Assembly: GCF_964204645.1 (NCBI RefSeq)
Contig: NC_134032.1
Coordinates: forward strand, 10,776,275-10,840,274
Length of the DNA stretch: 64,000 nt
Origin: Tubulanus polymorphus
Lineage: Eukaryota > Animalia > Nemertea
Direction of reading: 5' to 3'
How positions within the stretch are numbered: the first letter of the stretch is position 1; every line of letters begins with the position of its first letter. The notes beneath the pieces are model-generated. The model was not told where the DNA came from. It did not search any database and saw only the letters and a program-made list of their open reading frames with translations. The translations under genes were made by a program, and so were the position numbers. Shown here piece after piece: positions 120-40,897 of the stretch.

Positions 120-305
120 GAACACACCCTCAGAGAGTCCATACATATCCTTGGAGACCCAATACATCCTCAAAGACTCCAAACACACCCTCAGAGAGTC
201 CCAACACACCCCCAGAGAATCCCAACACATCCTTAGCGTCCCAATGCATCCTCAAAGACTCCACACACACCCTCAAAGAGTCCCGCCAACACATCTTTAC
301 AGTCC
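120..305. repeat. Degenerate ~20-21 bp minisatellite (aacacaccctcagagagtcc), about 9 copies
   Basis: Visible periodicity; last unit overlaps the exon 9 stop codon. Confidence 0.8.
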
Positions 306-580
306 GAGATTCATAGTTTTCAGTTCGTCGAGAATCTGCGAATGGTTTCGTCTCATGTGAGCTTTAAGCGTATCGAGTCGCGTGTACTGAGTAGCGCAGA
401 TCGCGCATTTGAACGCTTTACCCATCTGCACGTGTTGTACGAGCACGTGGCGTTTTAAATTGAAATTGTTCGCGCACACTTTATTGCACAGATGACACAC
501 GAACTTATCCACTCCGCCGCCGCCGTTGTTGTCGTCATGGAAATGACCTTGAAGTGGAGCGAATGGATTAAGAAGGTCAC
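297..580 (-). CDS. Alternative terminal exon 9 (most distal in window) of multi-isoform C2H2 gene; 2 C2H2 fingers
   Basis: Acceptor tcattccAG (582-581), phase 1, in frame with ORF 297-512; CHLC..RHVLVQH and CAIC..RLDTLKAHMRRNH; stop at 297. Confidence 0.85.
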
Positions 581-1407
581 CTGGAATGACAAGGAAGAGA
601 TAAATTTAGAAGAAAACAACAACGGCTTTTATTGTCTGCTCGCAATGGAAAGGGTTAACGATCAATAGACATTTTCAATATTCGAAAACTCTCAATACAT
701 TTGCTTCATTCTTTTGTAATTCCAGGTGACCTTCTAGTGTTGCTAGGATTTAGAATAGGCTAAAACAATTTGACTACTGGAGGTAGTTGCCCAGTAGCAT
801 CAGAGAAAACCCTCAATTCACTAATGTACCTAAATCCAACACTCTCAGATGAAAATGATACTAAGAAGGATGACTGTTCCGTATACACCATGCACCTGAA
901 CCTGTGCTGTAAGTCTGGTGTTTTGTCGGTCAAGAGATATTTCGGACAAGATTTTGTGCTCTAAATTCTATCCACAGAAGTTCAAGAAGTTGAAAAGACA
1001 ACAAATGAAAACAGAACGACACAATTTAGGAAAAATGATATAAAAATTTTGATTATTATTATTGGGCGAATAGTTTTTACAAGTAAAATTATTTTTCGGA
1101 GAATGACACGATTTAAACTTTATCGATATAGAATTTTCATCATTATTAGTCTCAAAGTTTTACAAATACAACAGCTTAATTTGGATGACCAGGGACTGCC
1201 CAGATATCTTTGAATTGATTAAAATGCGAAAATAAGATAATAATAGTTTACACGGTTCCAGGTTAAATGGACCAAATATTTCATCCGAATTAAGTAAAAA
1301 TCCGGATTAAAAAATTTGAATCAAGCAAGTTCAACAACTGTACAACTGTCATTCTTCGGTGGATATTCATTTCGTTTTCGATTACGGAGTCTTTTTCGAT
1401 CGTTCGT

Positions 1408-1880
1408 TCAATTTTGAAAGTTGTGCATTCCGACGAGCGGAGGAACGGCAGGCGGAGGATGCTTCGAATCGACGTGCGTTTTGAGGTTATCCGACCGCGA
1501 GAAACTACGCTCGCAAAACCGGCACTGATATCGCGTTTTGTCGAACATGTGAACGCCGGCGACGTGTCGATTCAGATTGAACAATTTACTGAACAATTTA
1601 TTACAAATCCGACAACGGAATCGCTTCAGGGCCGGCGGCGCTCCTCGACGACCGTCGCCGAACACCGGCGATCTGATGAACTCGACTTTATATAAAGATA
1701 AGTCCGACGACGTCGACGCAGCGGTCGGCGGATCGAGGCGACCGCGCTCGACGGGATTCTGTAACGCCTCGTACGGATCCGGCGCGCACCGATGACTCAT
1801 CGTCAAAGAATCTTCGTCCTTGTAATCCGTAGTTTCCAGATAAATGTCTGCGTTGTTGCCATGGTGATTGGCTCTCAGTC
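1408..1880 (-). CDS. Alternative terminal exon 8; 2 C2H2 fingers (Ttk/Fru-like HX4H)
   Basis: Acceptor catttttcAG (1882-1881), phase 1, open into ORF 1408-1806; CRIC..NLNRHVAGVH, CRFC..RSDNLKTHVDSKH. Confidence 0.85.
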
Positions 1881-3189
1881 CTGAAAAATGTCATATGGAA
1901 ACTACGGATTACTGAAATGCGTATGGCTGCGTGTATTCACTACGTGCATTAGGAAAAATAAAACATTACATGTGTATGAATATAGAAGATGGCTGTCTCT
2001 GCAAGTCCTCATATGACATCATCAAATTTTCATTTAGATCTATTAAAAATCTTAAAACTATACATTTTTATATACACATTGCTTTCACAATTTCCAAATA
2101 CAATTGACTAAGATTGGTGGATTTTCAAGGGCGGATCCAGAAGCCAATTTTGAAGGACTTGTCACATCCCAAAAAGGCACTTTGCTGTCCACAAAGGCAA
2201 TGTAGGGGCACTACTGCACTGAAATTCACCAATTATCTCTATTGACAAAAAAGAAAACAGCACTCGAAAAATTTGATGTAACTGTACAAGTGTCGAAGTC
2301 TTCCTGGATCCAACCCTCAATTGGACAGTGGTTATACAGTGGTTCATTCAGATTTGACTATAAAAACTTTCCCCCTTCATAGTAACGATGAATAAGAAGG
2401 GATTATGACATTTGTGGCGGAATAATTGACTATCGAATGCAACCATATTTTCTAAGAGGTTCTCCAGTGTTGGGAAATATAAACTAGCATCTAAAACCTC
2501 AGATTACAAAGAAACGGAGAGTTCGAAATCCTCTTGAGCCAAAAGCCTTTCTTCAAAGGAAAGGATGAGACCGACGAATCAACCGATACCGAATTACGCG
2601 ACACAGAAATATCAACATAACATGAAATATGTTTCTCGATGTGGTTGGATTTATTAAAATTGTTATAAACAGTTTTACACATGATATTTCTACAACATTT
2701 TAATAGATTTCCAGAAATATATATGAACCTCGTAAATACAATAGATGCGGTACAGCTGCTATGGTCAGTGGGGCCGCAGTTTCCTAGAAATATTCGAAGT
2801 ACACAAACCCGTGGGCGGGATTTCCCGGCAATTGCACCGTAGATAAGCGTTTTAGAAGCGGTGATCCAAACATTCAATTGCGATCCCGACACAGACAGAC
2901 CCCACCAGAACCACACACGCGCAATTATTCTATTTCATTCTATTACAATATCGACGATTAAAAGTGATTAAAGCATCACGAGCTATTTACAATTTAAAAT
3001 AATCATTTCTACATCCATATCGAAATAAACGCTTCTTATTCACTGAAAAACGTTCCCTCATTAGTAGCTGCAGTGGTTCCTGGTAAACCACCTCCTCTCA
3101 ACCTCACTCAGTTTGTCCAAATTAGTCAAGGTTTACTGTATGATACTACTTATGTATGACTCCTAGTAGTTGCGCCCAGTAAATGCTCG

Positions 3190-3328
3190 GATGTTACTTC
3201 TCCCCAGGGAGAGGATTAATACATGAATAGATAATAGGTAATAATACCAAGTTTGGAGCGCATTTGAACAGACTCTAGATTGGATACCTGCGCTATATAA
3301 ATAACAATTATGATTATTATCATCATTA
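3190..3328 (+). mobile_element. 3' fragment of the SINE family seen at 11332-11646
   Basis: ttctccccag...ggatacctgcgctata...(att)n tail shared with that copy. Confidence 0.6.
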
Positions 3329-3498
3329 CTTCTGTTTTATCAATATCAATTGCACACTATGTATTAACCATCAGGCTTTCACTCAGAAAAATACAAAGTT
3401 CATATTTGTCAACACAAATTTTCAGAATCGACTTCTTTTTTCCACTCCCACCTATCGGAAGGCATCAGAGTTAAGGGCATTCGGAAAGTATAGTCGAC

Positions 3499-3570
3499 CA
3501 CCTCGGCTGGGACTTGAACCCGGGTCTTCAGTTTGCAAGACGAATGCTCTACCAGTTGAGCTACCCGGGC
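3499..3570 (-). mobile_element. tRNA-derived SINE head / pseudo-tRNA
   Basis: A box TAGCTCAACTGGTAGAGC and B box GGTTCAAGTCC, but acceptor and anticodon stems do not pair. Confidence 0.65.
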
Positions 3571-3751
3571 AGATTGACTACTGATATTTCCTGCGATATT
3601 CCTTGCTTTCCTGGCACTGGCTAAGATATCTAAATTATATCTACCCGTACAACGATCCCTGAATGCCTTACGTGTATAAAAATCTGAATTTGCCGCGCGC
3701 AAAATATGAGGCAACCGTACGCACTGACGGGCACAAAGCCCTGAGGGATTT

Positions 3752-3990
3752 CTATGTGGGTAACACCGGATAACCGGGCGGCAATTCGAACCCGTGTCGC
3801 AGCCGGATGTGACAGCGTAACGCGTCTTTGCGATTGAAACGTTTTTTGCACACCATACACTCGTACGGTTTCAGTCCGGTGTGTATTAACAAGTGTCGGT
3901 TCAGGTGGCCCGTACGCGAGAAAAACTTCCCGCAAACGTGACATTCGAGAGACGGCGCCGGCGCTGCCCGAGCCGGCCGAGTGACCGCAT
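3752..3990 (-). CDS. Alternative terminal exon 7; 2 C2H2 fingers + HGFELP tail
   Basis: Acceptor ctattttcAG (3992-3991), phase 1 in frame; HTGLKPYEC linker; RKDALRCH. Confidence 0.88.
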
Positions 3991-4214
3991 CTGAAAATAG
4001 CCAAAAATGCGTAGAATTAGATATGTCTTTCGAGCGAGGAATTTCGGGTAAGTTTTTATTTTGGTCCCCCGTTAAAAGATTCGGCGGAAACCCGGCCGGC
4101 GAAAGCACGTGCGCGCAGAACCACGTTTTCTTTCAAAATTCACATTTTGGAGATCGAATGAAATAAATAAATAAAAAGTAATAAATAACTCGAAGAGTCG
4201 CGTCGAAATTTTTT

Positions 4215-4630
4215 TTATCCTTCGTCGCTTTGATTCAACAGCGGATCGAATAGATACGCCTGCTCGTCGCCGGTGACGCGCGCGGCAGACGGATCGTCGC
4301 CGGCGCCGGTGACCGTCGTTGTCGTCCGCCGCTCTCCCTCGTTATCATCGGCCGCCACCGTCAGCGGATATCGCCACGGCAACTCGAACCCATGCTGCAA
4401 ACGGATGTGGTTGCGCACGTTGTCGCGGCGATTGAAGCGTTTTTTGCAGACGATACATCCGTACGGTTTCTCGCCGGTGTGTATGAACGTGTGACGCGCC
4501 AGGTGGCGCTTCGTCGAGTAACATTTGCCGCAAATCGGGCAACTAAATTCCGAGTTCGTTCGCCGCCGGGCGTTGGTGTCCGCGATGCGCCGCTGTTGTC
4601 CCGCGAACGGCGTCGTTGTTGTCGGGGCCC
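4215..4630 (-). CDS. Alternative terminal exon 6; 2 C2H2 fingers + HGFELP tail
   Basis: Acceptor ctttttcAG (4632-4631), phase 1 in frame; HTGEKPYGC linker; RRDNVRNH. Confidence 0.88.
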
Positions 4631-4959
4631 CTGAAAAAGCCATACACAAAAATTACTGGAAAATTTTCTAACGAAGTTCAATCGCAGCCCGAAAAACCGG
4701 GTTCTTACATCTTAAACATGTACATAGCTTTTCAGGGCCCCGTGAACAGCAATTCTGGGGTTTGAACCCGACGCTCATAATCCACTACGACACAAACACC
4801 GGACATTTACATCCGTCTGAATACAAGATGTTTTTACGCTCCCAAACACTGGTTAGGTACTTAAGTAGACATTTACATAGCTTTAAGGTCAATTTTAGAC
4901 AAATTTCGTCACTTCACGGTCAGCTGGAGTAACTCTGCACTTTAACTGATTCGCCAATC

Positions 4960-5170
4960 GAAGGTCAATTTAACTCGCGAGTCGTTTCAACGTCACTTTA
5001 TCTTATGAGTCGTTTCGAGGTTGCTTTAACTTGTGAGTCATTTCAAGGTCATGTAGATGAGAAGTTTCATGGTAACTTTCTCTTACGAGTCATTTCAAGG
5101 TCAAGGTCGCTTAATCTTATGAGTCAGTACAAGGCCATGTAAACTTATGAGTAATTTCAAGGTCACTTAA
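4960..5170. repeat. Degenerate ~29-bp minisatellite (cttatgagtcatttcaaggtca...) in 3'UTR of exon 5
   Basis: About 7 units of gagtc(a/g)tttcaaggtc. Confidence 0.7.
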
Positions 5171-5204
5171 ACGCGGACGTAGTTTCATGATTTACGCGCA
5201 AGTT

Positions 5205-5506
5205 TTAATCGTCGGCGGGTTTCAACGACCAGCTGAGCGGCACCTCGAACCCGTGAGTCAGTTTTATGTGGTGGCGCACGTAGTCTTTGCGGTTGAAGCG
5301 TTTTTTACAGACGATACACTCGAACGGCCGGTATCCGGTGTGTATGATCAGGTGACGCGTCAGGTGACTCGACGACGAGAACGTTTTACCGCAAACCGTG
5401 CACGGGTTGCTACGCGGGTGATAGTTGCTATGACTACTAACGGCCTCCGACTGACGACCAGCCGACGAGCGGGCTGAGGCGGAGGACACGATTCGAAGAT
5501 CGAATT
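5205..5506 (-). CDS. Alternative terminal exon 5; 2 C2H2 fingers + HGFEVP tail
   Basis: Acceptor ttttctttcAG (5508-5507), phase 1 in frame; HTGYRPFEC linker; RKDYVRHH. Confidence 0.88.
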
Positions 5507-7828
5507 CTGAAAGAAAAAATCGAAAAATGCCGATAATTACTACGAACCAAGGATTGCCCTCATATCTTTCTTTCATCCAGTGCCGGAAGGAGTTATATCC
5601 AGTCAGTTTTCTATGCTTTACGGTCCTAGCATACCTTACAACCCCAATGCAAACTTCGGATTATGTAACTAGCGGTCGCTATCAATCTAAGCTCACTACA
5701 GTTTGGTCTTAAGCATTTTCGCAGTGTCCGCCATCTTGGAATTACAGTGACCGTGTTCAGTTGCCTGGTTCACCATTTTTTGTTACTAAATGACAATTGG
5801 TTTCACTTAGTTTGCGAATAGTCGACTAATTCCAAAAACTGATCATTCATTCAAATGTGTGATATACCAACATACTAAAGGTTCTTAGTCAAATTTGTCT
5901 TAGTTTTCGCCACTGTTTCTGGCAATGTCTGTGGATTCTACGGTCATTGTGGTAGAATTCTTCATACTCGGGTCATGAGATGATTAATCGAAACCCTCTG
6001 CCGCTTGGCAAGAAGTTCGATTTCAGGATTGCCCCAGTGCTTGCACGTTGAGCCTCAGCCAAAGAGTCGGATCGCGACAAAAGGGGTGGCACATCTAGTC
6101 TTAGATCGAGGTCGATGAAGCTGCCGAGCTAGATGCAACCTTCTAGATGTTCTCACAGATATTAGACGGATAGGACTAATATTTCCGAAGAATGAAATTG
6201 GAATTCGTCGTCGGCTTCGGAAATTGAAACAATTCCTTCTCGAAAGATGTTCATCCTACTTTCCCGAAAACGACATCAAATATCAAATACGAAAAGCCAA
6301 CTTACGTTTTTTTATCTATCAATTTCGATATCGACTTTTTTATTCATCCATTTATTACACATTTTTACACGAATTACTTCGAGGTTATTTTCATCCGTTT
6401 ACAAAAGTAAATAAAAATATATTCATATACATATATGTATATATACATAAAATATCAATTACTACTAGAACCTGGTATAATATTCCTCTAATTAGTCGTA
6501 GTTCGTTAAGTTTAATGAACTAAATATTCTCTTAAAATTTTCACATCTTGAATTGATATCTAATATGACTGTACATAGAATATCCGGATTATATATATAT
6601 ATATATAAGTAGTATACACGAACATTTCATAAATACCAAAGTAAAAATGTTAAAACTGTTCAAAGCACTGAATTGTCAGTATCCGGGGCAGTTCCACAAA
6701 AACGAAAAATTTAACACTTAAATCGATTCAATTTCTTCACTATCTAGTTAATCTTAACTTTTTGAGTGCGTTTACACTGCAGTACGGCGTATATATCGGT
6801 GATGTACTTCACTAATACACCGCATTATGGTGTTTCGATGTAATAAGTAATTCGTTTCGTATCTCCATTAAAAGATGGCAGCACCCGTCAAACTTGGTGA
6901 TATATTAGTAACCCAGTATGGCGGTCAGATAGTCAGCACAGAAAGGGTTTTATCGATTTAGCAGTTGAACTTTTTTATGAAACTGGGTGCCGAACAAACT
7001 TGATCATTGTCGGTTCATAATAAACTGTATATCCAACATACAAACATTAAAAAAAACAAATCATAAAATCCTAAAACACAGGTTTTGATATACATTTTTT
7101 GTTGATGAAAAAAAGTCTAATAAAATGAAGTCATCAGTTGCCGGAACTTGACACAAAGAATCCTGCTTAAATCCTGTAGTTAGGGGCCGTCAATGAAGTA
7201 TGTTTATGCAAAATTAGCCTATTTTAAAGCATCAGAATTTTTGCCTTGCCTCCCTGAGGATGCATGGATGCATGCAATTCCAACATATAATGGTCTATTT
7301 GACCCCTAACAGTGGACGGCTAGTAAAATTAAAGGGATACTTCGTATCGAAAAAAAAATGCAGACATTCTGGTTTACATTGCATGCCCCCCTCAGGGGCG
7401 ATCTGATTAACACAACCACTCCCCATCCCCCGCCCCTGACCATAATATGGTCATGGATATGTGCAAATTTCATTTATCCGGGTATTTCATTTTCTTAAAA
7501 CTATTCTATCGTTTCATGGAACCTCGCTAAAACAAATTACCCTTTTTCGTCCCAATATCCGACAAGTACCATGATACCAATTGTAATTGGGCTAATGAAC
7601 TATCACTTAAAAGACCGATTCCCTGAATTCAAAATAAAGTCTTCAATAAGAAATGGTCATTAAAGCTTAACGTGATTAATTTGCAGACAAGAACTTTAGG
7701 AGTCCGGTTTAAAAAGGTTCCACATAGGTATCCTAAAATGCAGTTAAATTCGAATGAATCTTGTAAAGGAGTATCGGCCAATAGGAACGAGCGTTACTGG
7801 CGGTATCAGCCAATAGGAGCGAGCGTTA

Positions 7829-8082
7829 CTACATCGGCTGAATCGAGTATCCGAACGGCAAATCGAAGCCGTGACAGTGCCGCACGTGGCAGCGCAGTTT
7901 GTCTTTGCGCGCGAAACGTTTTTGACAGACCATACATTCGAACGGTTTGACTCCGCTGTGTATCAACAGGTGGCGCTTCAAGTTATACGCGTTCTTAAAA
8001 TATTTACCACATTGCGAACAGTATTGTACGACCGAGCCGGACGAGGTTTGACTGCCGAACATACAGGACTGCGGCTGTGCCC
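7829..8082 (-). CDS. Alternative terminal exon 4; 2 C2H2 fingers + HGFDLP tail
   Basis: Acceptor tgccgtttcAG (8084-8083), phase 1 in frame with ORF 7829-8062; HSGVKPFEC linker; RKDKLRCH. Confidence 0.88.
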
Positions 8083-9352
8083 CTGAAACGGCACAAAAAT
8101 ATATAATAATTACTAACTGATCAACATTATTAATTAATTACTATTCGGTGCTAATAAACTACGAATCTACTACGCTTCGTTTAGGGTTAAAAAAAAAAAT
8201 ATGGCTGCAAAGCAGTTATAATGGGTTTTTCTGCGTTGCCGGTTCACAACGAGGTAAACAAAGTTTCATTGGAATTGCGGCCATTATCAGTACAACGAAT
8301 AGGGTTTTTTTGTAGGAGCGCCACCTAGGGGTCAAAACACGTATTATACGTGCGGTGCAATACGGGTTACTAAATACAAAGTTTATTCATCTATACACTC
8401 CCCTGGTATAGATAACGATTTTCAAATTCTTTTGATTATAATAGCTACGTAATCGTGAACATCGACCCAGTACGGGGAGTTGGAAAAAAAATTGAATCGC
8501 AAGTGAAATCTGCGACTCGTGGAAATTGGACGAAAACATTTTGCAAATGAGCAGGCCCGATCTCTCAACGAGTTCATAATAGCTAAACGATCAAATATTT
8601 TTTGCTCCCATTGCTGAATACGGAATCATCATACAACGCCGCCGTACGAATATTGATTAGACTTTAGCTTATCTAATGAAATGCCCATTAGGAATGTTTC
8701 GGATATAAAAATACTGGACTCAGTCGCACGGTCATGACTTAATGCGCACAAGTTGTCGTCTTCAAATCACAAGACTTAAATCGTAAGTAGTTAGATCGGT
8801 TATGGATGTAACTTCTTAAATTCAAGCCATGACGGTGTAACTTCGCTAGCTCAATTCACGCATCTTAATTACGATGATCACTTTTGGATTTCTAACGGAT
8901 AAAAAAATGGCCAGCCAGCAGTCCCGAAAAAAGCGGGTTTAGCAGTCAAAGGATTAATCAATATCAATTATACAAAAAATACCGAATAAAAAAATGCGCT
9001 CGGCAATAAAACTTAACAACATAGAGTTCTTCGGCTAAAATTCTATCACTCGTAACATTCAATTGAATTTTTGATTTATTCAATAATGGAAAGGGCCAGC
9101 CAGCAGTCCGAGAATTTGCAAGTTTAGCAGTCAAAGGATTAATTGATATGTTATCGATAACACAAAATTTATACCAAATAAAAAAACGCTCGGCAAAAAT
9201 GTACAAAACACGAGATCTCCTAAAATTCAAGAACTTTTTCAGAAATTGTGGATTTATCATATCAGTCAATAAAACATGAGGCCCAACCGGCAGTCCTGAG
9301 AAATGGTGGAATTCGAGACGATGGGTTTATCGATTGGAATTCGCGAGCGGAA

Positions 9353-9906
9353 TTATTCAGGGTTAGCCGGTACGGGATAGCCCTGCGGCAGCTCGAATCC
9401 GTGCCGCGTGCGTATGTGCACGCGCAGGTGATCCTTGCGTTGGAATCGCTTCTTGCACACCATGCACTCGAACGGTTTGACGCCGGTGTGAATCAGCGAG
9501 TGCCGCGTGACGAGCTGTTTCGACGAGAATCCTTTACCGCACGTCGTGCACGCGTACGACGTCTGAATCGCGAACACCGCGCCCGAGTTCGCGCCGCCAA
9601 CCTTCGTACGCGCGTTACCCTTACTCGCCGGCGACCGCGTCCCGCCGCGTCCTCGACCCTTCGCGGCGACCGGCGTTGACCGATTCCGTCGCGTCGGCGT
9701 CGACGTCAAGTTGTAGTCGTCGTAATCCGGTTGCCGGTAGTCGGTCGACTGGTCGATGTTCTCGTACGCGAAGTAGTCGGCGTTACCGGGAAACACGGGT
9801 TGTTGTTGCTGTTGCAGATGACCGCCGTAAATATCGTCGTCGAAGTCCGGCGGCATCTGCTCCTGCAGTTGTTGCTGCTGTTCGATTTTCAGGCCGTCAG
9901 GTAAAC
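9353..9906 (-). CDS. Alternative terminal exon 3; Q-rich linker + 2 C2H2 fingers + HGFELP tail
   Basis: Acceptor tgccgtttcAG (9908-9907), phase 1 in frame with ORF 9353-9856; HTGVKPFEC linker; RKDHLRVH. Confidence 0.88.
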
Positions 9907-10479
9907 CTGAAACGGCAGAAAATAGAACAGGTTACAACAACAACTTACACGTCACCCGAGGACTTGGAAACGTCCGAGCAACCCTTTTCGCTCGTTTACG
10001 CGACTTCGGGCGTCTGGTTTTATTACCGCGGGAGGTTTAGAAAATCACGTCGCGAATCATAAAATCTTATCGAATTTCGAAATACACCGCGATCACGTAA
10101 CAATCAGGTACCGGCGACACAGCGCCATCTGGCAACCAGCCTACTGGATGGATGACGCGCGACTTAATAACAGCAGGTCTTACGCGCCGAATAAACGGTG
10201 GCCGTCGTGATCTCACGAGAGTCCGCGCGATAAAAATGCCCTCTTTTCTCTGCTGCTTTTATTCCACGAAAATATCTTCAATTTTTCCGTCCTCGCAACA
10301 TTTGCTTGAAAGCTCAATACAGCATTGATAAATCCAACAAGACAACCACCTAAACATCCATCCATGCTTACGGTGTGGATCTTCACCAAACAAGGTCGTA
10401 CGTGAACCGCCCCCAATGATTAAGGTGCGCAGGGATAACATCCTAATGGAGTCCAGTACGGGTTAAAACCCTCTTAGTA

Positions 10480-10945
10480 GGTTGCATGGGACTATCCCGG
10501 CTCACTTTGAACACAGTAAGGGGTTCCCCACGTAGTAGACACGACAGGACTAACCCCGCTCACTCGGTTGACTGTACAGGACTAGCCCTGCTTATTGAAT
10601 AGACTGTACGAGATAAACCCCGCTCACGGACAGTACAGGGTTCCCCTCGTAGTAGGCTGTACGGGACTAGCCCCGCTCACCGAGAAGACAGTAAGGGGTT
10701 CCCCTTGTAGTAGACTGTACGGGGATACCCCGCTCACTGAGTAGACTGTACGGGGATACCCCGCTCACTGAGTAGACTGTACGGGGATACCCCGCTCACT
10801 CAGTAGACTGTACGGGGATACCCCGCTCACTGAGTAGACTGTACGGGGATACCCCGCTCACTCAGTAGACTGTACGGGGATACCCCGCTCACTCAGTAGA
10901 CTGTACGGGGATACCCCGCTCACTCAGTAGACTGTACGGGGTAAC
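10480..10945. repeat. 31-bp minisatellite GTAGACTGTACGGGGATACCCCGCTCACT(G/C)A
   Basis: Seven near-perfect units 10710-10926 plus degenerate units to about 10480; first unit is the end of exon 2 CDS. Confidence 0.95.
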
Positions 10946-11239
10946 CCTGCGGCAACTCGAACCCGTGACACGAGCGTATGTGAACGCGCAGGACGTCTTT
11001 GCGATTGAAACGTTTTTTGCACACCATACACTCGAACGGTTTCAGCCCGGTGTGTATGAACATGTGACGCGTGACGAGTTGACGCGACGAGAATCCCTTC
11101 CCGCAGGTGGCGCAGTTGTACACGACGGCCGTCGAGTATCCGCCGGTCGCCGCCGCCGCTGAACTCGAGGAGGTCGGAAGCTTCGTCGGTGTTTTGTTGG
11201 TTTTCGTGCCTCTTCGGTTATTTTGGCGACTGCCGACGC
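10920..11239 (-). CDS. Alternative terminal exon 2; 2 C2H2 fingers + HGFELP tail
   Basis: Acceptor tgccttttcAG (11241-11240), phase 1 in frame with ORF 10920-11123; HTGLKPFEC linker; RKDVLRVH. Confidence 0.88.
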
Positions 11240-11331
11240 CTGAAAAGGCACAAAAACCGACATATTAATCCGACGGAGCAAATTACAAAAAGCCGCGCAG
11301 ATTGTTCGTTTTTCGAGGGGGGAGGGTTAAT

Positions 11332-11646
11332 GAATAATAATAATAATAGTGTCGATATAGCGCAGGTATCCTAACCAGTCCAGTTCAAACCCGTTAATTT
11401 GATATCATTACCCCTCGCCTATAACTCTATTTTCTGTATCAGTCATCTCTCGCTGGGGAGAAGTTACATCATCCCAGCAACTACCGGGCGCATCTATCTA
11501 AGGAGTCATCTATCAGGCCAGGTACCCATTTACTCCTGGGCGGATAGAGGCAATGAGGATGTCTTGCCCACTACGGTAATATACGGGTTCGAACCCACGA
11601 CCAGGCTTCCCAAGGAGTCAAACACTCTAACCACTCAGCCACACCA
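11332..11646 (-). mobile_element. tRNA-derived SINE
   Basis: Head GGTGTGGCTGAGTGGTTAGAG...GGTTCGAACCC, central ccaggagtaaatgggtacc, tail tgcgctata..(ATT)n. Confidence 0.75.
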
Positions 11647-12561
11647 CTTTGAGGGTAAGTAGATTGTCACCGATTCATACACCATGGTGCAGTCCATATA
11701 TTTCTATGATTTTTTCTTTGTGGGAGGCGGTCACAAACCTACAAGTCCGAGCACAGGAATATTCTAATCCGACAGAAATATAGCGATATAAGGAGACGGA
11801 GCCATTTCTTACTTTTTGTTGGCGGGAATATCACGAGGTCTCCTAACGTCGTGGATACAATCATTAGAAATGCCGGGGATGTATTTGGCAGCTATGAAAT
11901 GTTATCGACGTTTGGGGAGGGGATATTCCTCGTCGTAACAACTCTAACAAAGACCATAGACAAACCGTCTTCAAGGGGCGGATTCAGGGGGACAGGTGAG
12001 ACTTGTACGAGTCCATCTTTTTTCGAGTACCCTTTCTCGTCGTGTCAACAAAGATAATTGGCGCATTTCAGTACGGCAGTGCGCCTTATATTTCCCTCGT
12101 GTGACAAGTCCTTGAAAATTTGCACCTGGATCCGTGCGCACTCTTGAAATTGCAAAAACAAACAAACGATAAAATCGTGAAAAATTATATTATATAAATT
12201 TATCTTTGATTATCGTCGAATCAGCTAAACGTACATACATCGTACTATAACGATATATCCATACATAGAATATTTGATTATTTTTTTCCCTCGATTTTAA
12301 GTTAATGTCGATTACAACGATTTCTGAACTGGAAGAATTTGCCTACTTTTTGCCCACGCGGCAAACACAGCCTGCCGGCATATACAACAACAAAAAACCA
12401 CTCGCCCAATTTTCATCAAAATTTTCTTTAAAAACTCATGCACAATCACATTAAAACAACATATTTACGCTAAATCATCTCGTTTAAGTATCTTGACTGC
12501 ACGCGATTCTAAATTACACATTTGACCAGAGGTCCCTCCCAGATATCAAAATCAGGTAAAA

Positions 12562-12810
12562 GGTGCGATCACACGTAGACGATTTCGCCCAGGTCAAACT
12601 GGTCCGGACTAGGCCGAATTAAATTTGGCCCGTGCTCAAGTAGAGAGCGCATTCACGTAAATGTAAATTAATACTTTGTCGCAGTTACTTCCAGAACTGG
12701 TTACCATTCAGATGGAGTAATTCAAAAGATACCTAAGTTCGGCACGGACATCTACAATACCAGCCAATTTGACCAGGGTAAGAAATGCTTACGTGCCATC
12801 GCAACCAAAG
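12562..12810. mobile_element. MITE-like element (gcgatcacacg termini), related copy at 44917-45105 in opposite orientation
   Basis: Shared aaatttggccc and gagcgca motifs; imperfect TIRs. Confidence 0.55.
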
Positions 12811-12944
12811 TCTTAACCGTTTTAAAATAAATGCAAGTTCATTTTTTACTGACTAAAATATTACCAAATAATATCTCGACCGCGTAACTATAGCTCATGA
12901 TCACAGAAAGCCTATCGATTCTTATGGAATTAAAACGAACAACG

Positions 12945-13183
12945 AACTGATCGGTCAAACCGCGACGAATTTTAACATCTAGCATCAACGGTTACCTCGA
13001 AAATTTAATATCTGATTAAAACAATTCAACTAAAACTACAGATTAACTGGAATAACTTTCTAGAACTGATCCGCCAAAACCACGGCGAATTTTAACATCT
13101 AGCGTTAACAGTTACCTCGAAATATTCAATATCTGATTAAAACAATTTAACTAAAACTAACGATTAACTGGAATAACTTTCTA
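12945..13183. repeat. Two-copy ~119-bp tandem duplication
   Basis: aactgatc...gaataactttcta occurs twice. Confidence 0.8.
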
Positions 13184-13599
13184 CAAAAAAATTGCGTCTC
13201 ACGAAACATTTTCTCTTTTTGAGAAAAGAAAAACACGTATTTAAAAACTAGCAAACGTAATAATAACATAAAACATCAAGCCTTGCAATCGAGCAAATTT
13301 TTATGATAAAATCAAATTTTGATTCAGTTAAGTTCACGCCGACACATTTAGCGTAGCCCGCTAAAATTGAACAGGAAAATCAACCACGCCATAACACACA
13401 CACAACCACGCATACTACACTGTCCATGAAATGCGCTGGTAATTTCAAAAATTTTCATAAAAAACAAATCACCGCGAGACATTTTCCCCATGATTTTTCG
13501 GTCTGACGGGTATAAAAAAATAATCACATTCTGGTCGTAAATCATGTAAAGCTCTTCGTAAAAAACATCAATGCACAGCGTACGAGAGCGGAGCAAAAC

Positions 13600-14052
13600 T
13601 AGGGAATCCCCCATGTATCAGGGAATTCCCTCAAAAATGGGGTTCCCGACTTACACCCGGGAAATCCCTACACTTAGGGGTTAAAGAATACCCCCTCCAC
13701 AGAACCAGAGAATAACCTTTCCATCGGGTATTCCCTAAAAAGGAATTCCCAGCCAATACCAGGGTATCCCCGCGACGAGGCACCAAACAGCGATCAGTCA
13801 GTGAACCAGAACGTATATCAGGGAATTCCCTTGAAAACAGGGATTCCCCAGCCAACACAAGGGAATCCCCTGCATTGAGGCATCAAACACTGATCGGTGC
13901 TACGTGATAACGTAAAAAAAAACACACAATGAATCGTTCAGACATGATACTCAGCAAAGCCGATGAGAGAATCTCTCCATACACCTGGAAAGAGCCTCCT
14001 ATCAAGGGGAATCCATCGTATCAGGGGGGGGGGGGGTGATCTGGGAGTTCCA
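13600..14052. repeat. Degenerate repeat of (a)gggaat(t/c)ccc palindromes in 3'UTR of exon 1
   Basis: More than 10 gggaatccc/gggaattccc motifs. Confidence 0.6.
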
Positions 14053-15038
14053 TTAGACTTGCAGCATATCCTTATGCATACGATTCATGTGCACCTCGAG
14101 ACCGGACGTGTTGCGGAAGCACTTCGTGCAGAAACGGCAGCTGAACGGCGCGATGCCAGGATGCGTACGCAGGTGCCGCGTCAAACTCGACTGCACCATG
14201 AACGCCTTGTCGCAGAACTGACACGCGTAACGCAGACGCGGATCGCGCGCAGGCGACGACGACGCCTTCACGCCGTACACGAGCTGCTGCTGCTGCTGCG
14301 CGACGGCCCCGTCCGCGTAGACGTCGTACTTAACGTCGATATCCGGGAGTTCCTCTTTATAATCCTCGTCGTCTTCATCATCATCGACGGCTATAGGCAC
14401 GGGATCACCGTCATCATCATCGCCGTCGATTACATCCCCGTAATCGTACGCGTAATCGACCTTCTGATTACCGCCCGAGGTCGTGCGACCGCGTGTGTTG
14501 TAAATGCGACTCGATGCCGACCCTTCGACCTTAACACCGAGCGAACCTTCGACCTTCACCCCCGACGACGATCCTTCGACCTTCACCCCTGACGACGGAG
14601 GCCGATATTTCTGCGGAGTCGTCGCGACGTTATTGTTGTGATAACTCGAACGGTTTATGACGGGCGGTTTTACCGGAGTACGCGCCGCCCGGCCCGGCGT
14701 GAGACGATGCGGGGAACGGGCGATACCGCCGGGCGTACGAGGAGACCGCGCCATTGCCTTCGACGGCGATGGATCGGGCGTCCGAAAAATCTTCGCGTCC
14801 GCCGGCGTTTTGCGATCGTCGTCGACCGCCCAATCGTCCGTCGACGGTTTCGCCGGTGACGACTGCACGTTTTTGATCTCGTGTCCGGTGATGCCGTAGT
14901 TGATGAACAAGCGGTCGCCGAAGTTCGGCGGCGTGCTCTCGTCCTCGACGATCTCGATGTCGTTATCGACGTCCGCCACCGGTGGCGCCGGCGGTTTAGC
15001 GTCTTCCGTCGCAGATCCCTCATTCCATCCGGCATCAT
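14053..15038 (-). CDS. Alternative terminal exon 1 (proximal); long S/T-P-rich and acidic linker + 2 C2H2 fingers
   Basis: Acceptor tattttgcAG (15040-15039), phase 1 in frame with ORF 14053-14979; three VKVEG repeats; CQFC..RHLRTH, CRFC..HMNRMH. Confidence 0.88.
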
Positions 15039-15105
15039 CTGCAAAATACGGATGGAAGAGGAGACTTAGAACAGAAGTTGCTGATGATGTTGTTGATGGC
15101 GGAGG

Positions 15106-19060: not shown

Positions 19061-20119
19061 CGGTCGAATGCGAACTAGGACCGGGCATCGGTTGACCCGG
19101 CGCGCCATGGTGGTGATGATGATGCCCCATCAACTGATTCTCGTAGCCGGCCATCATGCCCGGTTCGACTTTGATAATCTCGATCGGATCGTCGATATCC
19201 TCTTCGCCGTCGTCGGCGTAGTTATCCGCCGCCGTCGCCGACGAGTCGTGGTGATACTCCGGTTTCGGTTCGAATATCTCCGTGTTTTGTAACGGCGCCG
19301 ACACGTCCGTTGTCTCGCGGCTATCATCGCCGCCGCCACCGGTCGGTATATACGACTCGTAGCTACCGTCCACGGGCGGCGCCACCGTGCCGTCGTCCGT
19401 CCGTCGTTGCTGCTGCTCCGGTTTGACGTCCTGCTCGGAGTTCTTAATGCTCAACAACGTCGACTCGATCTCCTCGGTCGTGAACATTTCCGCCGACGGC
19501 CGCACGACGCCGCCCGCGTCGCCGACGCCGTGCGCGCCGGACACGCGGTGCTCGCCGTCCTCGGCGGCCGGCGATACTGACGGAATAGACGACGGAATAT
19601 TTGCGGCCGCCGCGTTCGGCGACGACGACGAAGAATGATTAGGCGAAGACATATTGTTACTGAAAGACAACTGAGGCCGGTGTTTCGGACTCATCATTTG
19701 TTGGTGTTGCTGCTGATGCTGCGGTGATGGCATCGACATGCCGTGTTGCTGCTGCCCGGTAACCGGCGACATCGCCATTTTTTGCGGTGTCGACGACGGA
19801 GATTTGCGCGGAGTCATTTTTTGCGGCGTCGTCTGTTGTTGCATGCCGCCCGGCGAGCGATTCGCGTACGGCTGATGGAGCGGTCGCGGTCCGACGGCGC
19901 CGCCGCGACCACCGAAGTTCATTTGCGCGGCGCGATTCTGCGGGGGAATCGACGACATCATCGCCGGCGCGGTGCCACCGCCTCGCCGACGTTTCACGGC
20001 ACGTAAAACGTTCTGCGCGACCGCTTGTTTGCGGTTCATGTCCAGGCGACGTTTCGGCGAGTTCTGCTGGTGCGGCATCGCGACCACCATGCAATCGTCG
20101 TCCGCTAATCCGCCTTGAC
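19061..20119 (-). CDS. Shared coding exon 2 of the C2H2 gene (basic NLS-like segment, Q/P/S-rich disordered region, IKVEP motif, His run)
   Basis: Acceptor cctcgacAG (20121-20120); strong donor CCG|GTAAGT at 19060, phase 1; matches ORF 18990-20090. Confidence 0.9.
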
Positions 20120-20697: not shown

Positions 20698-20851
20698 TTT
20701 TAACAGTTTGTCTCCGCGACGACCAACGAAACCACGTATTGTCATCGACCGTGACGACGATTTCGTCGAGCCAATCCAGATGGCGCCGCAAACAGAGTTT
20801 CAGCTCGTCCTCCCGGACGTGGAGCCCGACTCCTTCCATGAACAACACCAT
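20698..20851 (-). CDS. Shared coding exon 1 of the C2H2 gene: 51-aa N-terminal module MVLFMEGVGLHVREDELKLCLRRHLDWLDEIVVTVDDNTWFRWSSRRQTVK
   Basis: NAGNAG acceptor TAGCAG at 20898-20893; in-frame TGA upstream of ATG 20851; donor A|GTACGT at 20697, phase 1, joins next exon in frame (TVK-S-QGGLADDDCMVV). Confidence 0.8.
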
Positions 20852-22099
20852 GACTCTTTCCTGAGTGTCTCTCGATCAGATGTAAATCTGGCCTGCTAGA
20901 AAAATATCAATACTCAATGAAAGCTCATGACTAAAAAGGAAATTAGCGCTCCAGGCCCATATTTTCCATTGTCGGTCATTTAAGTTTCAAGTGTTCAGAG
21001 TTAAAATTTGTTCATTTTCAGTGTTTGGCTTCGACAGTCCACCCTTTTTCTAAACTTTTAAGCCCTAATAGGTATTTTCCGAATTATTTGATATGGTATG
21101 ATCCTGTACGAACCTACCACACCTGCTTGAAGTGGTTTTGATTTTGAAAATGGAAATGGAATTTAAGCCCAAGTTGGGCGAAGTGTTGAATTTAAATAAT
21201 TATTCGCTTAAACCAAAGCACGCAAATAGAGAGAATGCATCCTCCCCCAGCAAGTATTCGAATTCCTGTTGGCTACGAGACACGCCACGGTACGAAACCC
21301 TGCCACAATAGACTGAATGTGCTGGATCACTCCAAGGATAAACAGTGATCAAATATTGGATTTCTATCTATCTTCTTCACTGAGATCCAAGGACATCAGT
21401 CGATCTGTCTTGTCAAACTTTTGCATTTGCAAATTTTGATATAGAAAATACTAAGTAACCATTAGCAACTAATCCAAAAAGCTCTACCGATTCAATTTTA
21501 GTAGTTGAATAAATCTGTCTAACCCGTATAATATGTAGGCTGGTAGATGAATGAAGTAGTTCCACAAGTGAATTTCATATGATAAAATTTATTAAAATGA
21601 AAGCACATTTCAACCGTCAAAAGCTATATCATCAAGTAAACAAACCAAATATTTTGACAAATACTACATTCAATAGCAACTGAAAATATGAGTTCTTAAC
21701 TCTATTTGAAACTGGACCATCCGCGAAGTCAATTAAAAAAATTAAGTTTCATAATAGGCCTAAAAGAAAAATAATTCATCATGCCTAAACTTGTACTGCA
21801 ATAAATAATTTCAAATTCTAAGTTATAAAATTCTAATGATCAATATTCCAATAACCCGATTAGAGCCTTTCAAAAACCTATTGAATTCGACATCAACAAA
21901 GAGGTTCACCTAAGGTTCATCGATTCAGGGTTCAATAATAATGGCGTCGACACAATGCACCCCGATGCAGCAACTAGCAGCCATGATGGCGAACCCAGAT
22001 GTCGTTTAGCCCCAGTTCAAAGCGCCCACTTCACACCCGATTTACAACCTTTTCGGCCCAGAATAAATCGCGAAATATGCATTAAATGATTCTCAATAC

Positions 22100-29800: not shown

Positions 29801-30656
29801 TTCTAAAACGTAAAATAGAGCCTGTTGTACCAATCTCCGCTATTTGACAAATGATTGGACGAACGAAGTGACCACCATTTGCTCTCGGACAAGAACGGCA
29901 TTGATTTTCCTTGCTGTTGGACGCGCGCCATGTCACCATGTGCATTCATGCGAGCAAGGCTCTCCCTTGCAGCATTCTTCCTTTCAGCATCTAAAATTTG
30001 CAAAATTCCATTTTATTGCTGATCTCCTGTGATGTTTTTAATTGGCCGGGGTCGACATTTCCTCGGCTCTCTAGCTCATTCGAGGCGAAAAACGATAACA
30101 ATTTAGCACGCCTCGAGCGTATGAAACCTACGTATTCTCGATTATAGCTTGTAGCTTATAAGTTGGAACCACAGAAAAATCAGAAAATTTGAACGTTTTA
30201 GATGCGTTTCTTAGCCATTCTAAAAAAAAAAAACGGGAATCAAACGCCGAACATCGACAAGCGGGAACTGGTAACGACCTAAGTGGACGAGTCGGTAGAA
30301 AACACGACTATTATCATTACCATCATGAACCGCAGTTAAAATTCATTTTTTTAATGAAATATTTTCATTAATTTTATTTCGTCGTGGTAACCGTGAGCTA
30401 CAAAGACAATTTCTCCATTTAACTTAATCGCGACGATGCATTTGCCAAATGATTCCATATAATGACACTGTACCTGCAACTTAACTTTCTTCTAAAACTT
30501 ATAACATGCATTCTGCTTATAACCAGCAGAGAATCCGTCTGTCTATTCCTTTCTATATTCTATACTAATTGTGAAGTGGCGAATGTATCCTTATAGTGGA
30601 ATGTAGTGAATGCAACTAATTTGATTTAACGTTCAGTAACCATGGGTGTTCGTTGT

Positions 30657-32799
30657 TCACATATGATTACTGCTGCTTATGTCGGCCATCGTTCTTTTCG
30701 TTTGAATGCTCAAGGAATCTTCATACATCGACGAAGCCGGGTTTCTGGTGAACGACACACCGACGAATCTCATACACGACAGCACCCTACGCTTCATAAC
30801 CAGACGAACCTCGTTGCCGGAAATGACGTAGATGAAGAAATTTATGCCGTAGTTCATCTGATAGAAGAACTCGATGATTTCACGAGCCGGTAACTCGCCG
30901 CTGATCGAGCCGAAATAGCGCTTGACGACACCTTCGAAGATCCAGGCGGGAAGGGTCAGAATCAAGAACGAGCATGTTAGCAAGAGTAACATGGCGGTGA
31001 TTTTGTTACGCGCTTTGGACGAAACTTTGCTGGTGTCGGTCGGCCGGTGGCGGAAAAGCGAGAAAACTACCAAAGCATTGCTTATTATGATGACTAGTGC
31101 TGGTATATACTCCATGGGAAAGCCGAGATAGAGTTGGGTAATCCATCCGATTTCCTGCGGGACCGCGCAGAAGTTTACATCACTCACGAAACGGATGTAA
31201 ATGATATAATATAGCGTGGACAGAATGGCAAATATGAAGACCCCGACGATAATCAATCTTGCGACCTTTGGACTGAGCCTGGTCGTAATAAACGGGAACC
31301 AGACGATAAGAAAACGCTCGAACGCAATAGTAGCCATCATCCACGCACCCGTTATCTGCATCACATCTGGAATACCTGCGAGTGAACAAAACAGTCCATC
31401 ATTAATTACTGAATTTGTCTTAACCCTGTTTTTTGAACATAAGAATACCGATATATTGACTTTGTCGTCCAAGTCTAGGCTTCAGAATTTAACGCTTCAA
31501 TCATATATTCAACTGGTTAGATTGCCAGCGCCCATCATCGACATATTCAAGACGTAGGCTTCGTATTTATGGCTTTTTGTAGTCATACCAACGTTCACAA
31601 GCGAATCGGATCCTAGTTCAACAGATGTGAGCTACGTTTAAATCAGAACGGTGGAACTGGCACCTGTATTATATCGGGACTTATTTCGCATTGGCGACAC
31701 GCGAATTTGATGAATACAGAGCTAATTCCCTTTCTCTCTCTCGGTACTAATCCCCTCCGTATATTTGTACAGAGCTAGGGAGACAGGAAATAGCACATCG
31801 TTTGAAGATTTTTTCTCGCTTTGTATCCGTATTACTGCAATAGTGCAATTCACTGTCAAAAATATACCAGTGAGTGAGGAAATAACTGTCATAATTCATA
31901 TCAATTCTAATTATAGATATTATTAGCATCACTCATCAATGTGGCGAATGCTTCTTTTCTAAGTTTGGATTTTAATATCTTCACCTAATACTTTTAAACA
32001 ATAAGAATCTGCATCTTCTGTATAAGGGGGAAATGTCGAGATCCCTACAAGCAAAACAGTCATTGGTAGTTTGTATCACTCCCATAAGAGATTTATAAAT
32101 CATTATCACAATTGTCTCTAACTTCTTTAGTTTCTTATATTTCACACACATAGCTTAGGTCTGAAACAACTAAGATATATTTAGAAAATTGGAATGATAT
32201 TCCTGAGTCATGTTTGGGAAATTCTGGGAGCTTTTAAAAAAATAACAGTTATAGGCTCCTACTTTTTTCGGCAGCAGTATCCATAGCAACCTTGCCTGAT
32301 CATACAGGACAGGTGGCAGCCCCCTCTCAACAATGTTCTGGCTACGCTCCTGAAAGAAATGTAATATAGGCCCTAACTTATACAGAATTTGCATACCTTC
32401 ACCGAGGATACAGCCGACATCGTTATAAAAACCAATAACCGCTTTCTTTCCCATAGCCAATAAAATCATGTTCAACCAAGAACAAAACCGTGCCGACAGC
32501 ATGGCGTTGTCGCAAACAGCTAAGGTGGCGATGTACCAGGCGTATGTGTGCTTTCTCATAGCGCTGTCCATCATTATCACCAGGGTCATCGTGTTACCGA
32601 AAAACCCGACCAAAATTATCATGAATGTCCCGATGAATCTCATCCACCGGACCCATTCGGGCAACTGATTTATGTCCCAGTAGAGGTTGGCAATCAAAGC
32701 TGGCCAATACTCGAGAATCCATTGCGTCTGAGATCCTACGGCGGTTGTACCGTTAGGGGGCGTCATGGTTTCCGTTGGAATGGTGGTGAATGTCGTCAT
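30657..32799 (-). CDS. Class A (rhodopsin-like) GPCR, invertebrate peptide-receptor-like (FMRFaR/Srw-type expansion); exons 32799-32397 and 31375-30657, about 373 aa
   Basis: GFFGN (TM1), LAVCD (TM2), FERF (TM3), LTLP (TM6), NYGINFFIY (TM7); phase-1 intron GAAG|GTATGC...cgcAG. Confidence 0.88.
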
Positions 32800-33756
32800 T
32801 CTTACGACTATCTTTCTTCTGGCCGACGTCACTTCCGCCGTAAACACTGCAAAAAGCGGTACCTGAAAATATCATACGAGAAAATCACAGATATATGCGA
32901 TCAGCTACGATCTCACTTTGATGGTTTCGACGAGACAATACTCGCAACTGGTGGTAAAGTTGGAACTGATCAATGCAGCAAAAAACAAGGAAACGAACTT
33001 TTAAACGCATGGATAATCCTCACGTCAAACACCTCATATAATCCTATTATTCTATTCTTTACATCTAAAACTGCTCCACAAAATGCTGGATTGGAAAGTA
33101 ATCAGTCCTAATGACTGAACGCGAATCGTTTGACATTTAAACCGTCCATAGCAAAGCTGGATTTCTATTGGAAACGCACAGTTTCCCTCACTAATACAAT
33201 TTGTCGCGAAAGTCAAATTGATCGACTACACATCCTTAATGAATAGCTGTTGATTAGCTACGATATTTACCTTCCATCGTTAGATAATTAATGACTTCCA
33301 ATAAATATTCATTCATCAGTCATTTTACAGGAAATTACACGAAATTACGGATCCATTCAAAATATGCATCTACGTGTAAAAAGACGAATTATGAACCCAC
33401 TTTCGAAGTTGGTGTTATTTTTCGCTTAGGTTAACAGGTTCTTTTACACCATATTGATGAGGTAGGGTTCCTAAATTGCATCGAAGATCACCTACGTACC
33501 ATATTGTCACATTGGAAGGTCTTGAAGTTGCGGGGTTAGAAGGTACATTCAACAGCACTGTATGAGAAGGGCCGAACTGTAACTCTATGTCGGGAAACTA
33601 ACTCCTGATGGTTTTGTACATTGAGAAGGGGAGATGAAGAAAAATAAGTTTAAAATAATGTCATCAGCTAACGCTTGACGCAGAACAAATGGAATCGGAC
33701 TGACATTACCTGAATTGATCTATAGGTTACTAAAAGCTACATTATGAAATTTATAC

Positions 33757-34562
33757 AGGGCAGTGACGATAAAGAATGTCGAAACCGTCACCAACATCAT
33801 AGTGGTTTGGTTCGTTCTCGACGATTTGTTGCCTCCTGAGCCAAATTTACTAGATCGGTAAAGTTGTACTCCGATTATTATATTAAATACTGACGTTAGT
33901 ACTATGGGTACAATGTAAAGGTAAGATACAGAAAATGTTAACCAGATTTGATAGACGTCTTGATTCGTGTACAAACATCCGATACTTGGAGAATAATCGT
34001 GGAATATGATAACAAGCGGTGCATTTAAGGCAGCACTTAAAAGAAAAACACCGCACACGACACACCTGGCAAAACGGGCAGTGCAAAGAACTCGTGACGT
34101 AAACGGGAATAAAACTAACATCAAACGTTCAAATGAAATGATAACCACGAATGAAGAACTACAGTACGTGCATGCTGCGAATAGAAATCCGTAAATTCGG
34201 CAGTTGGTTGCGCTAATTAGGTTAATCCCACCCATGAGATAACTGACTACTGGCATTAAGCACGACCCCACGGAAATCGACGTATCCGCCACTGCAAGAG
34301 CCGCCAGATAGCTAGCGAATGACAATCGCCTGAAATTTTCGGACGTCATGATCAGAAAGCTCGAACAATTTCCAAACAATCCAAAGGCGAAAATGGTTGG
34401 CAACAGAATAAGTGAGGTGATCCTCAATTCTGGGGGTAGGTTTAACAAGCTAAGTAGCAACGTGCCAGAATAAAAGGGTCGGCTTACGCGCCTCGTAACG
34501 GAGATATTCATCATGTAACACCACTGCCCGCCTGATCGCTTTGTCTTCTGATTCAAATGCAA
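33757..34562 (-). pseudogene. 3'-truncated class A GPCR (TM1 to mid-TM6)
   Basis: GLFGN, LAVAD, FERL present; similarity to paralog 35277-35733 stops abruptly after FIVTAL; no TM7 found. Confidence 0.7.
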
Positions 34563-35276
34563 CAGTTTCCAGAAGAATATAAATCAAAAATCAATGCTAA
34601 TTCAGCGCACACGACATTTTCATTATCATCAATCAGCTGAGGCTGTACATCTATAGAAGCATTCATGTTTTCATTATCTAGGGCATAGACAATTATTTTA
34701 TGCGTGGTAAGCATCAATAACACGCGATACAATGAATATGTTACAAGTATATTTATTTCGATTTTTGATATTTCTCATTGTGTTCTGGTAAAAATCAAGC
34801 AGAGTCATTCGACGCATGCAATGTTACAAAAGACATACAATACACATGTAAAACGTTCTACTACGTTTTCAAAGAGAATGTAATCATGTAAAAAAATTAA
34901 AAGAGTGCTGCCATTTCTTAATGATGATAGATTATTTCGTATTCCTCGACATGAGAAGAAATGTGATTATTCTAACATAGTCGGAGTGTTTCAGATTCTT
35001 TTCGATTGTAACCAATTTGTCCCTGAAAAGTCTAAATTATTCCCTCGTTACTTTTGGCGAAATCTAAATTCTCTTAAGTTTTTCGAATTCATATCATCTT
35101 TAGGATTTCAGAAACGAACATGTGATTTCATAATCGAAGCAGAATGTACATTCCAAGTTTACAATCTCACGCATTCCCTAACCTCGGGTAGGATACGGAT
35201 ACTAGTGCTAAGACTGAAGATCTCGGAAATGGTACTGTATTCAGTTTTTACTTTGAATGAAATTGAAGTCAATTTT

Positions 35277-40861: not shown

Positions 40862-40897
40862 TCAGAGCCACGATATAAATGGTGTTTACCCGTTTTA

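Follow-up and report, generated by a model that had tools for sequence, protein, structure and literature searches.

Predicted local hairpins over most variable 3' splice sites of a zinc-finger terminal-exon array in the nemertean Tubulanus polymorphus

We analysed a 64,000-nucleotide stretch of the Tubulanus polymorphus genome (contig NC_134032.1, positions 10,776,275 to 10,840,274; hereafter the window), in which a protein search places the gene LOC141910263 on the minus strand, downstream of MED30. Six of the nine variable 3' splice sites (acceptors) of this gene are predicted to be closed by a strong local RNA helix, and the reading we favour, which on the modelled folds has in our judgement an even chance of being right, is that local self-masking dampens the acceptors so that distal exons get used. 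The coding plan consists of two common exons, a phase-1 donor at 19061/19060, and nine alternative terminal exons, E1 to E9, whose first bases lie at 15038, 11239, 9906, 8082, 5506, 4630, 3990, 1880 and 580, respectively. All nine acceptors are YAG and in phase with the common donor, and each exon encodes a linker, a C2H2 pair and a stop. Two more in-phase phase-1 acceptors are located ~630 and 1360-1420 bases beyond window position 1 on the minus strand, the first opening a 55-amino-acid acidic tail without zinc fingers and the second (with two possible acceptors) a homeodomain open reading frame (ORF). They are candidate exons 10 and 11, and the array, as read from the sequence, would present nine to eleven competing terminal acceptors behind one donor.

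Closure was expressed as the opening energy, i.e. the energy needed to free positions -25 to +2 around the acceptor, with 20 shuffles each. The six strong acceptors (E1, E2, E3, E6, E8 and E9) open at 18.7-29.1 kcal/mol, each above 20/20 shuffles, while 17 control acceptors, mostly predicted exons rather than RNA-proven ones, open at 3.1-11.2 kcal/mol. Masking is thus found at 6/9 variable versus 0/17 control acceptors (Fisher p=0.0004; Mann-Whitney p=0.003). The best local helix, compared with 100 shuffles per acceptor, points to the same six (E1 p=0.02, E2 0.01, E3 0.03, E6, E8 and E9 0.01 each) and is not significant for E4, E5 and E7; the tight-window fold z of the six stems goes from -3.4 to -7.3. 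The first-pass annotation of this DNA had described every acceptor as self-masked, by stems to be set against control acceptors and shuffles: for these six the description holds and both comparisons are exceeded, while E4, E5 and E7 fall outside it. Concerning the natural background, helices this strong touch 8.3% of the 27-nt zones across 124 kb, giving a binomial p=2e-5 for 6/9, or p=1e-4 for 6/11 when eleven acceptors are counted, the two beyond E9 being unmasked (opening 7.9 and 5.9 kcal/mol). An opening energy of 18.7 kcal/mol is reached by 7% of 221 acceptor-like YAG sites, and by 16% where the downstream sequence is GC-rich; with alternative zones, 3-5 of the nine acceptors are still above the 95th background percentile. 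It should be noted that thresholds were set after seeing the data and that E2, E3 and E4 are related (see below), so the true p values are weaker; even so, in the folding model the enrichment of helices over variable acceptors stands.

The strong stems, together with the weaker one of E7, are the following, all of them local (<170 nt):

15003..15077, minus strand: E1 hairpin, intron arm 15049-15077 with exon arm 15003-15031 (predicted fold)
11180..11279, minus strand: E2 hairpin, pyrimidine tract (core 11242-11262) with exon (core 11195-11215) (predicted fold)
9868..9941, minus strand: E3 hairpin with the junction at its centre and the AG within the paired top stem (predicted fold)
4613..4752, minus strand: E6 stem, upstream intron arm 4719-4752 with junction-spanning 4613-4648 (predicted fold)
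3972..4100, minus strand: weaker E7 stem, intron arm 4084-4100 with exon start 3972-3988 (predicted fold)
1822..1912, minus strand: E8 hairpin, intron 1891-1912 with exon 1822-1843, AG in the loop (predicted fold)
571..735, minus strand: E9 stem, upstream arm 714-735 with acceptor 571-592 (inverted repeat)

Two geometries are observed, as had been annotated: in E1, E2, E3 and E8 the tract pairs with its own exon, and in E6, E9 and weakly E7 an intron arm lying further upstream pairs with sequence spanning the junction. E3, E6 and E9 have the AG inside the helix, and E1, E2, E4 and E8 have it in the loop. The E1 hairpin is considerably longer than the 13 bp initially reported, with ~30 bp closing an 8-nt loop that holds the AG, a fold of -39.6 kcal/mol (z -5.9) and an opening energy of 20.5 kcal/mol. 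E2 has the strongest opening of the nine (29.1 kcal/mol); its G-U wobbles had been taken to favour the transcribed strand, but the opposite strand folds better (-52.2 versus -46.8). E3 is centred on the junction as first described (-40.6 kcal/mol, z -7.3, opening 25.1 kcal/mol), and the E6 stem does cover the AG, as well as the tract, opening at 18.7 kcal/mol. In E8, which opens at 19.0 kcal/mol, the intron arm corresponds to positions -32 to -11, the likely branch region, and in E9 the upstream arm is an inverted copy of the acceptor (21/22 bp) that leaves the AG fully paired, opening at 23.8 kcal/mol. The arm coordinates of the first-pass annotation were all reproduced, including the perfect 17-bp inverted repeats at E8 (1822-1838/1896-1912) and at E9 (571-587/719-735), the latter extending to the 21/22 bp just given. 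Its weak stems at E7, E5 and E4 fared unevenly. The E7 stem exists, but at the exon start and not over the acceptor: it covers only the first ~20 exon bases and leaves the pyrimidine tract free, the acceptor opening at 5.3 kcal/mol and the exon-start zone, picked post hoc, at 21.3 versus 13.4+-2.5. That of E5 is no better than chance (opening 6.9 kcal/mol, z +0.95), and E4 has only a marginal 6-bp stem (8076-8081/8090-8095; opening 13.6, z -1.9, 7/200 shuffles equally good).

The helices are also exon specific in the model, since when the introns of the nine are recombined with the exons, each of the six strong cases gives its tightest closure, along both row and column, in the native combination, a specificity that for E6 and E9 depends on their own upstream arm. 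Stems had been claimed to share no sequence and to be independent, which agrees with E1, E6, E8 and E9, whose stems look separate in origin, and not with the rest: alignment shows an intron arm common to E2/E4 (p 0.01) and E3/E4 (p 0.005), and E2, E3 and E4 partly cross-pair in swaps, hence their hairpins probably descend from one ancestral hairpin. The E6, E8 and E9 stem regions have one match each in the genome, in a search that may miss common words, and no Rfam family above gathering score; as single-copy regions, they are not the ends of miniature inverted-repeat transposons, a candidate that was rejected.

The mechanism we envisage is as follows. Where a single donor faces last exons in tandem, the acceptor and poly(A) site transcribed first would enjoy a head start. 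At six of the nine acceptors a local helix could form while the exon start is being transcribed, burying the branch region, the pyrimidine tract and/or the AG, and this burial would slow recognition by U2AF, SF1 and U2. The polymerase would then often pass the exon and its poly(A) site before commitment, and distal exons would gain share; with helices private to each exon, a common docking site would be unneeded. The three exons nearest the donor (E1, E2 and E3) are all masked. We infer that the helices fold in vivo, that they repress, and that there is selection for balanced exon choice.

Isoform use was approached through read contigs over window positions 250-5750, to which run X7 contributed none. 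Runs X2 and X3 are not registered as RNA; their uneven, run-specific depth makes it probable that they are. A 309-nt contig of run X2 aligns only from its base 31, at 4626, with ~26 foreign bases ahead of the E6 acceptor. It departs where the path from the common exon to E6 would split from that to E4, hence the common exon is probably spliced to both, as judged from this one clipped contig. Junction evidence therefore comes from the RefSeq protein for E1 and from the clipped contig for E6, and was not seen for the others. Contigs of these probable RNA runs span the E6, E7 and E9 acceptors unspliced; that of run X2 over E9 (525-811, depth 19.7) stops near 811, and depth is zero at 986-1169, a gap that is either a filtered hole in the 3' untranslated region (UTR) of E8 or a sign of a separate transcript start upstream of E9. 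No polymorphism in the arms was found among 40 of 132 variants, a sample too partial to conclude from.

A cluster of paralogues 0.5-0.7 Mb away (same contig, 11.39-11.54 Mb), with genes on both strands, one of them bearing at least 34 zinc-finger terminal exons, offers an internal comparison. Across 200 kb of this cluster, 54 predicted variable acceptors do not, on average, exceed the controls in closure (p=0.16). Within the 34-exon paralogue, masking affects 3 of the first 4 acceptors versus 1 of the remaining 30 (p=0.003, the cut-off having been picked post hoc), and rank and closure correlate at -0.31 (p=0.07), which lends weak support to a brake on donor-proximal exons. In the paralogous stem the likely branch region is base-paired to the part of the exon that encodes a PWEP peptide; the stem may have been inherited and decayed in most copies, or may be a coincidence kept by protein constraint. 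A PWEP-type peptide occurs ~6 residues into many variable exons of this large array, where its DNA may also resemble an RFX X-box half-site; a similar motif is present in E8 near 1857-1866. Three of the RefSeq proteins of the cluster look like alternative exons chained together.

Several observations weigh against self-masking as a means of reaching distal exons. Masking is not graded along the array, with E4, E5 and E7 open and the distal E8 and E9 shut. Run X2, a crude measure, reaches its greatest depth over masked E8 and its least over open E5, contig depth (equally crude) does not drop with stem strength, and the RefSeq protein uses masked E1, which leaves the earlier proposal that stem strength sets isoform ratios unsupported. 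The common ancestry of the E2-E4 hairpins leaves only about five independent cases. There is no consistent strand preference across the stems, three favouring the transcribed strand and three the other. Only 6/54 paralogous acceptors are masked, so that such arrays work without masking and do not need stems at every exon. Covariation, which the first-pass annotation had looked to and which was run on the paralogues only, does not exceed shuffles in 21 distinct arm pairs (P 0.35-0.79), what was apparent by eye being absent in the test, and the paralogous exon arm doubles as code for the conserved PWEP peptide.

Other explanations have to be considered for the same stems. They could be by-products, i.e. 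short inverted duplications made by template switching or quasi-palindrome correction near exon boundaries while the array duplicated, and tolerated rather than selected. The perfect 17-22 bp inverted copies at E8 and E9 do resemble single recent events, and the lack of strand asymmetry and of covariation, as well as the stemless state of most paralogous acceptors, would fit; nevertheless we regard this origin as unlikely, since no known mutational process hits variable-exon acceptors yet spares 17 controls, the E1-E3 stems are long and interrupted, suggesting age, and E2 and E3 each retain a hairpin, apparently in different pairing registers. The helices could alternatively be coupled to 3'-end formation, either keeping stray splicing out of the 3' UTR of the exon before, or controlling how a poly(A) site in the loop is used. 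The E6, E7 and E9 acceptors, which the probable RNA contigs cross unspliced, fall inside the 3' UTR of the preceding exon or where that UTR ends. After the E8 stop the sole AATAAA (at 633) is enclosed by the loop of the E9 stem, and after the E6 stop the sole one (at 4060) by that of the E7 stem; E5 lacks a canonical hexamer ahead of E6. This coupling is rather unlikely as a general account, given that it concerns two cases only and leaves E1, E2, E3 and E8 unexplained, with runs that are not on record as RNA and no 3' ends seen.

As platforms for double-stranded-RNA proteins such as Microprocessor or ADAR, the hairpins would let the acceptor be repressed, cut or edited in a regulated switch. 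Across the junction, E1 and E3 fold in the model into unbranched hairpins ~75-90 nt long with about -40 kcal/mol, like the DROSHA hairpin (PMC5473138), and the AG is paired in E3, E6 and E9; against this, there is no Rfam match above threshold, the loops of E6, E8 and E9 are large or branched, and the A-to-I editing that had been proposed for the stems left no sign in the contigs over E9, E7 and E6, which show 0 differences and no T>C excess versus a DNA run (contigs drop rare variants), so that we find a protein switch quite improbable. The helices might also enhance rather than repress, by presenting the AG in a loop or shortening the branch-to-AG distance, or might belong to acceptor transcripts with a start of their own, spliced in trans after the manner of lola and mod(mdg4). 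The AG does lie in the loop in the four exons named above, run X2 is deepest over masked E8, and upstream of E9 its depth ends near 811, ahead of the gap at 986-1169; yet most of the stems pair the tract or the branch region, the common intron holds no strong U1-like pseudo-donor (best 8/11), all exons are on one strand, and holes in contig depth prove nothing, which makes enhancement or trans-joining very improbable. The most remote candidate is a docking site of the Dscam or PGRP-LC type, located in the common intron, which would compete with the hairpins and open the chosen acceptor. Our scans of this intron found no segment that pairs with acceptor regions better than controls and no common selector k-mer, bearing out the first-pass annotation; acceptor-to-distal-intron pairing was screened by ungapped repeat search alone. 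An AU-rich segment near 17990 pairs with 8/9 targets at one score threshold, but not at the other three, its P against a natural-sequence null is 0.04 uncorrected, duplex energies are not above shuffles (p 0.07-0.9) and positions are scattered; a 71% repeat (10008-10042/18971-19005) tried as a docking pair was not significant either (p=0.57).

Regarding the rest of the gene, the exons are located as follows:

20698..20892, minus strand: common exon 1, ~51-amino-acid N-terminal domain, ATG at 20851 (ORF and database searches)
19061..20119, minus strand: common exon 2, low-complexity, 353 amino acids, ending in the shared phase-1 donor (ORF and splice analysis)
14053..15038, minus strand: variable terminal exon E1, linker and C2H2 pair, isoform of the RefSeq protein (in-phase acceptor)
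10920..11239, minus strand: variable terminal exon E2 (in-phase acceptor)
9353..9906, minus strand: variable terminal exon E3 (in-phase acceptor)
7829..8082, minus strand: variable terminal exon E4 (in-phase acceptor)
5205..5506, minus strand: variable terminal exon E5 (in-phase acceptor)
4215..4630, minus strand: variable terminal exon E6 (in-phase acceptor)
3752..3990, minus strand: variable terminal exon E7 (in-phase acceptor)
1408..1880, minus strand: variable terminal exon E8 (in-phase acceptor)
297..580, minus strand: variable terminal exon E9 (in-phase acceptor)

The sole RefSeq protein of LOC141910263 returned by the search joins the common part to E1 (51+353+328 amino acids). No Pfam family matched the N-terminal domain or the common exons; the domain has 42 matches in the T. 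polymorphus genome, and protein and short-query searches found no homologue outside this species, all nameable related proteins being from T. polymorphus. No further zinc-finger exon is present in the next 60 kb past E9. A 31-nt tandem repeat (10678-10981) begins in the last codons of E2 and carries its stop codon repeatedly into the 3' UTR, and tandem repeats also follow E9 (121-284, 21 nt) and E5 (4931-5193, 28 nt). The intron between E7 and E8 contains a tRNA gene or tRNA-like element (3498-3571, minus strand; Ala by ARAGORN, Rfam 45.8 bits). Elsewhere in the window, as judged by eye, several ~370-amino-acid ORFs resembling G-protein-coupled receptors occur on both strands within 30600-41000 and 50400-62400, and the same regions hold multi-exon genes with vWA-like segments, a copy of which is found 3-9 kb beyond the window start.

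Docking sites, trans-splicing or poly(A) timing account for only part of how one donor selects a last exon from a long tandem series. A bolder form of self-masking, which we put forward tentatively and consider doubtful, is a balancing free of both docking and trans-splicing, in which private hairpin brakes were gained at least five separate times in one gene, and again in the sister array, with their strength tuned to set the mix of zinc-finger factors. Should the hairpins function as proposed, they would amount to a third, purely local solution, addable exon by exon as an array grows, and arisen in a lineage whose lola-like gene has another N-terminal domain. Being compact, the locus also carries internal controls, namely the open E4, E5 and E7 and a sister array with few stems. 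Acceptor masking itself is already known, and the new part would be its array-wide, docking-free form; our literature searches, in which subscription journals were thinly covered, gave no example of a terminal-exon array with private hairpins at the majority of its acceptors.

Among known systems, the alternative 3' exons of Drosophila lola carry zinc fingers, as do the predicted ones described here. Both lola and mod(mdg4) combine a common 5' part with many alternative 3' exons (PMC4387717), and no acceptor hairpins for them turned up in the literature searched. They have, however, an N-terminal BTB, absent from the common exons of LOC141910263, and rely on trans-splicing via a U1-binding TSA motif (PMC4387717), of which no counterpart was found here. 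In Drosophila PGRP-LC, CG42235 and Pip, docking site-selector pairing takes place in the 3' variable regions (PMC6191721), i.e. RNA structure likewise acts in mutually exclusive 3' cassettes behind one donor; but there a common docking site activates the chosen acceptor, whereas in LOC141910263 no common partner was found and the stems would repress. LOC141910263 is not a docking site-selector system. Closer in presumed mode of action are F8 intron 15 and MALT1 exon 7, where acceptor masking by structure represses splicing (PMC11802352), and DROSHA, where an exon-intron hairpin promotes skipping (PMC5473138): in all of them the pyrimidine tract or splice site is concealed within a local helix, and here a stable predicted helix covers the branch point, tract or AG beyond chance at 6/9 acceptors. 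In each of those cases one exon is masked, rather than the majority of the exons in a tandem terminal array. The presumed purpose is the one known from the Dscam1 balancer Ubs6.1-Dbs6.40, in which boundary-spanning pairing masks the proximal acceptor, represses splicing of exon 6.1 and counters a first-come, first-served choice (PMC8791459). The balancer acts over a long range of ~10 kb through one upstream element with several competing partners, in concert with a docking site and on internal exons, and was demonstrated by covariation and mutants, whereas LOC141910263 would use predicted local stems of <170 nt, each private to one terminal exon and with no docking site found; in both, pairing spans the intron-exon boundary of the proximal variable exons, here, as predicted structure, at E1, E2 and E3.

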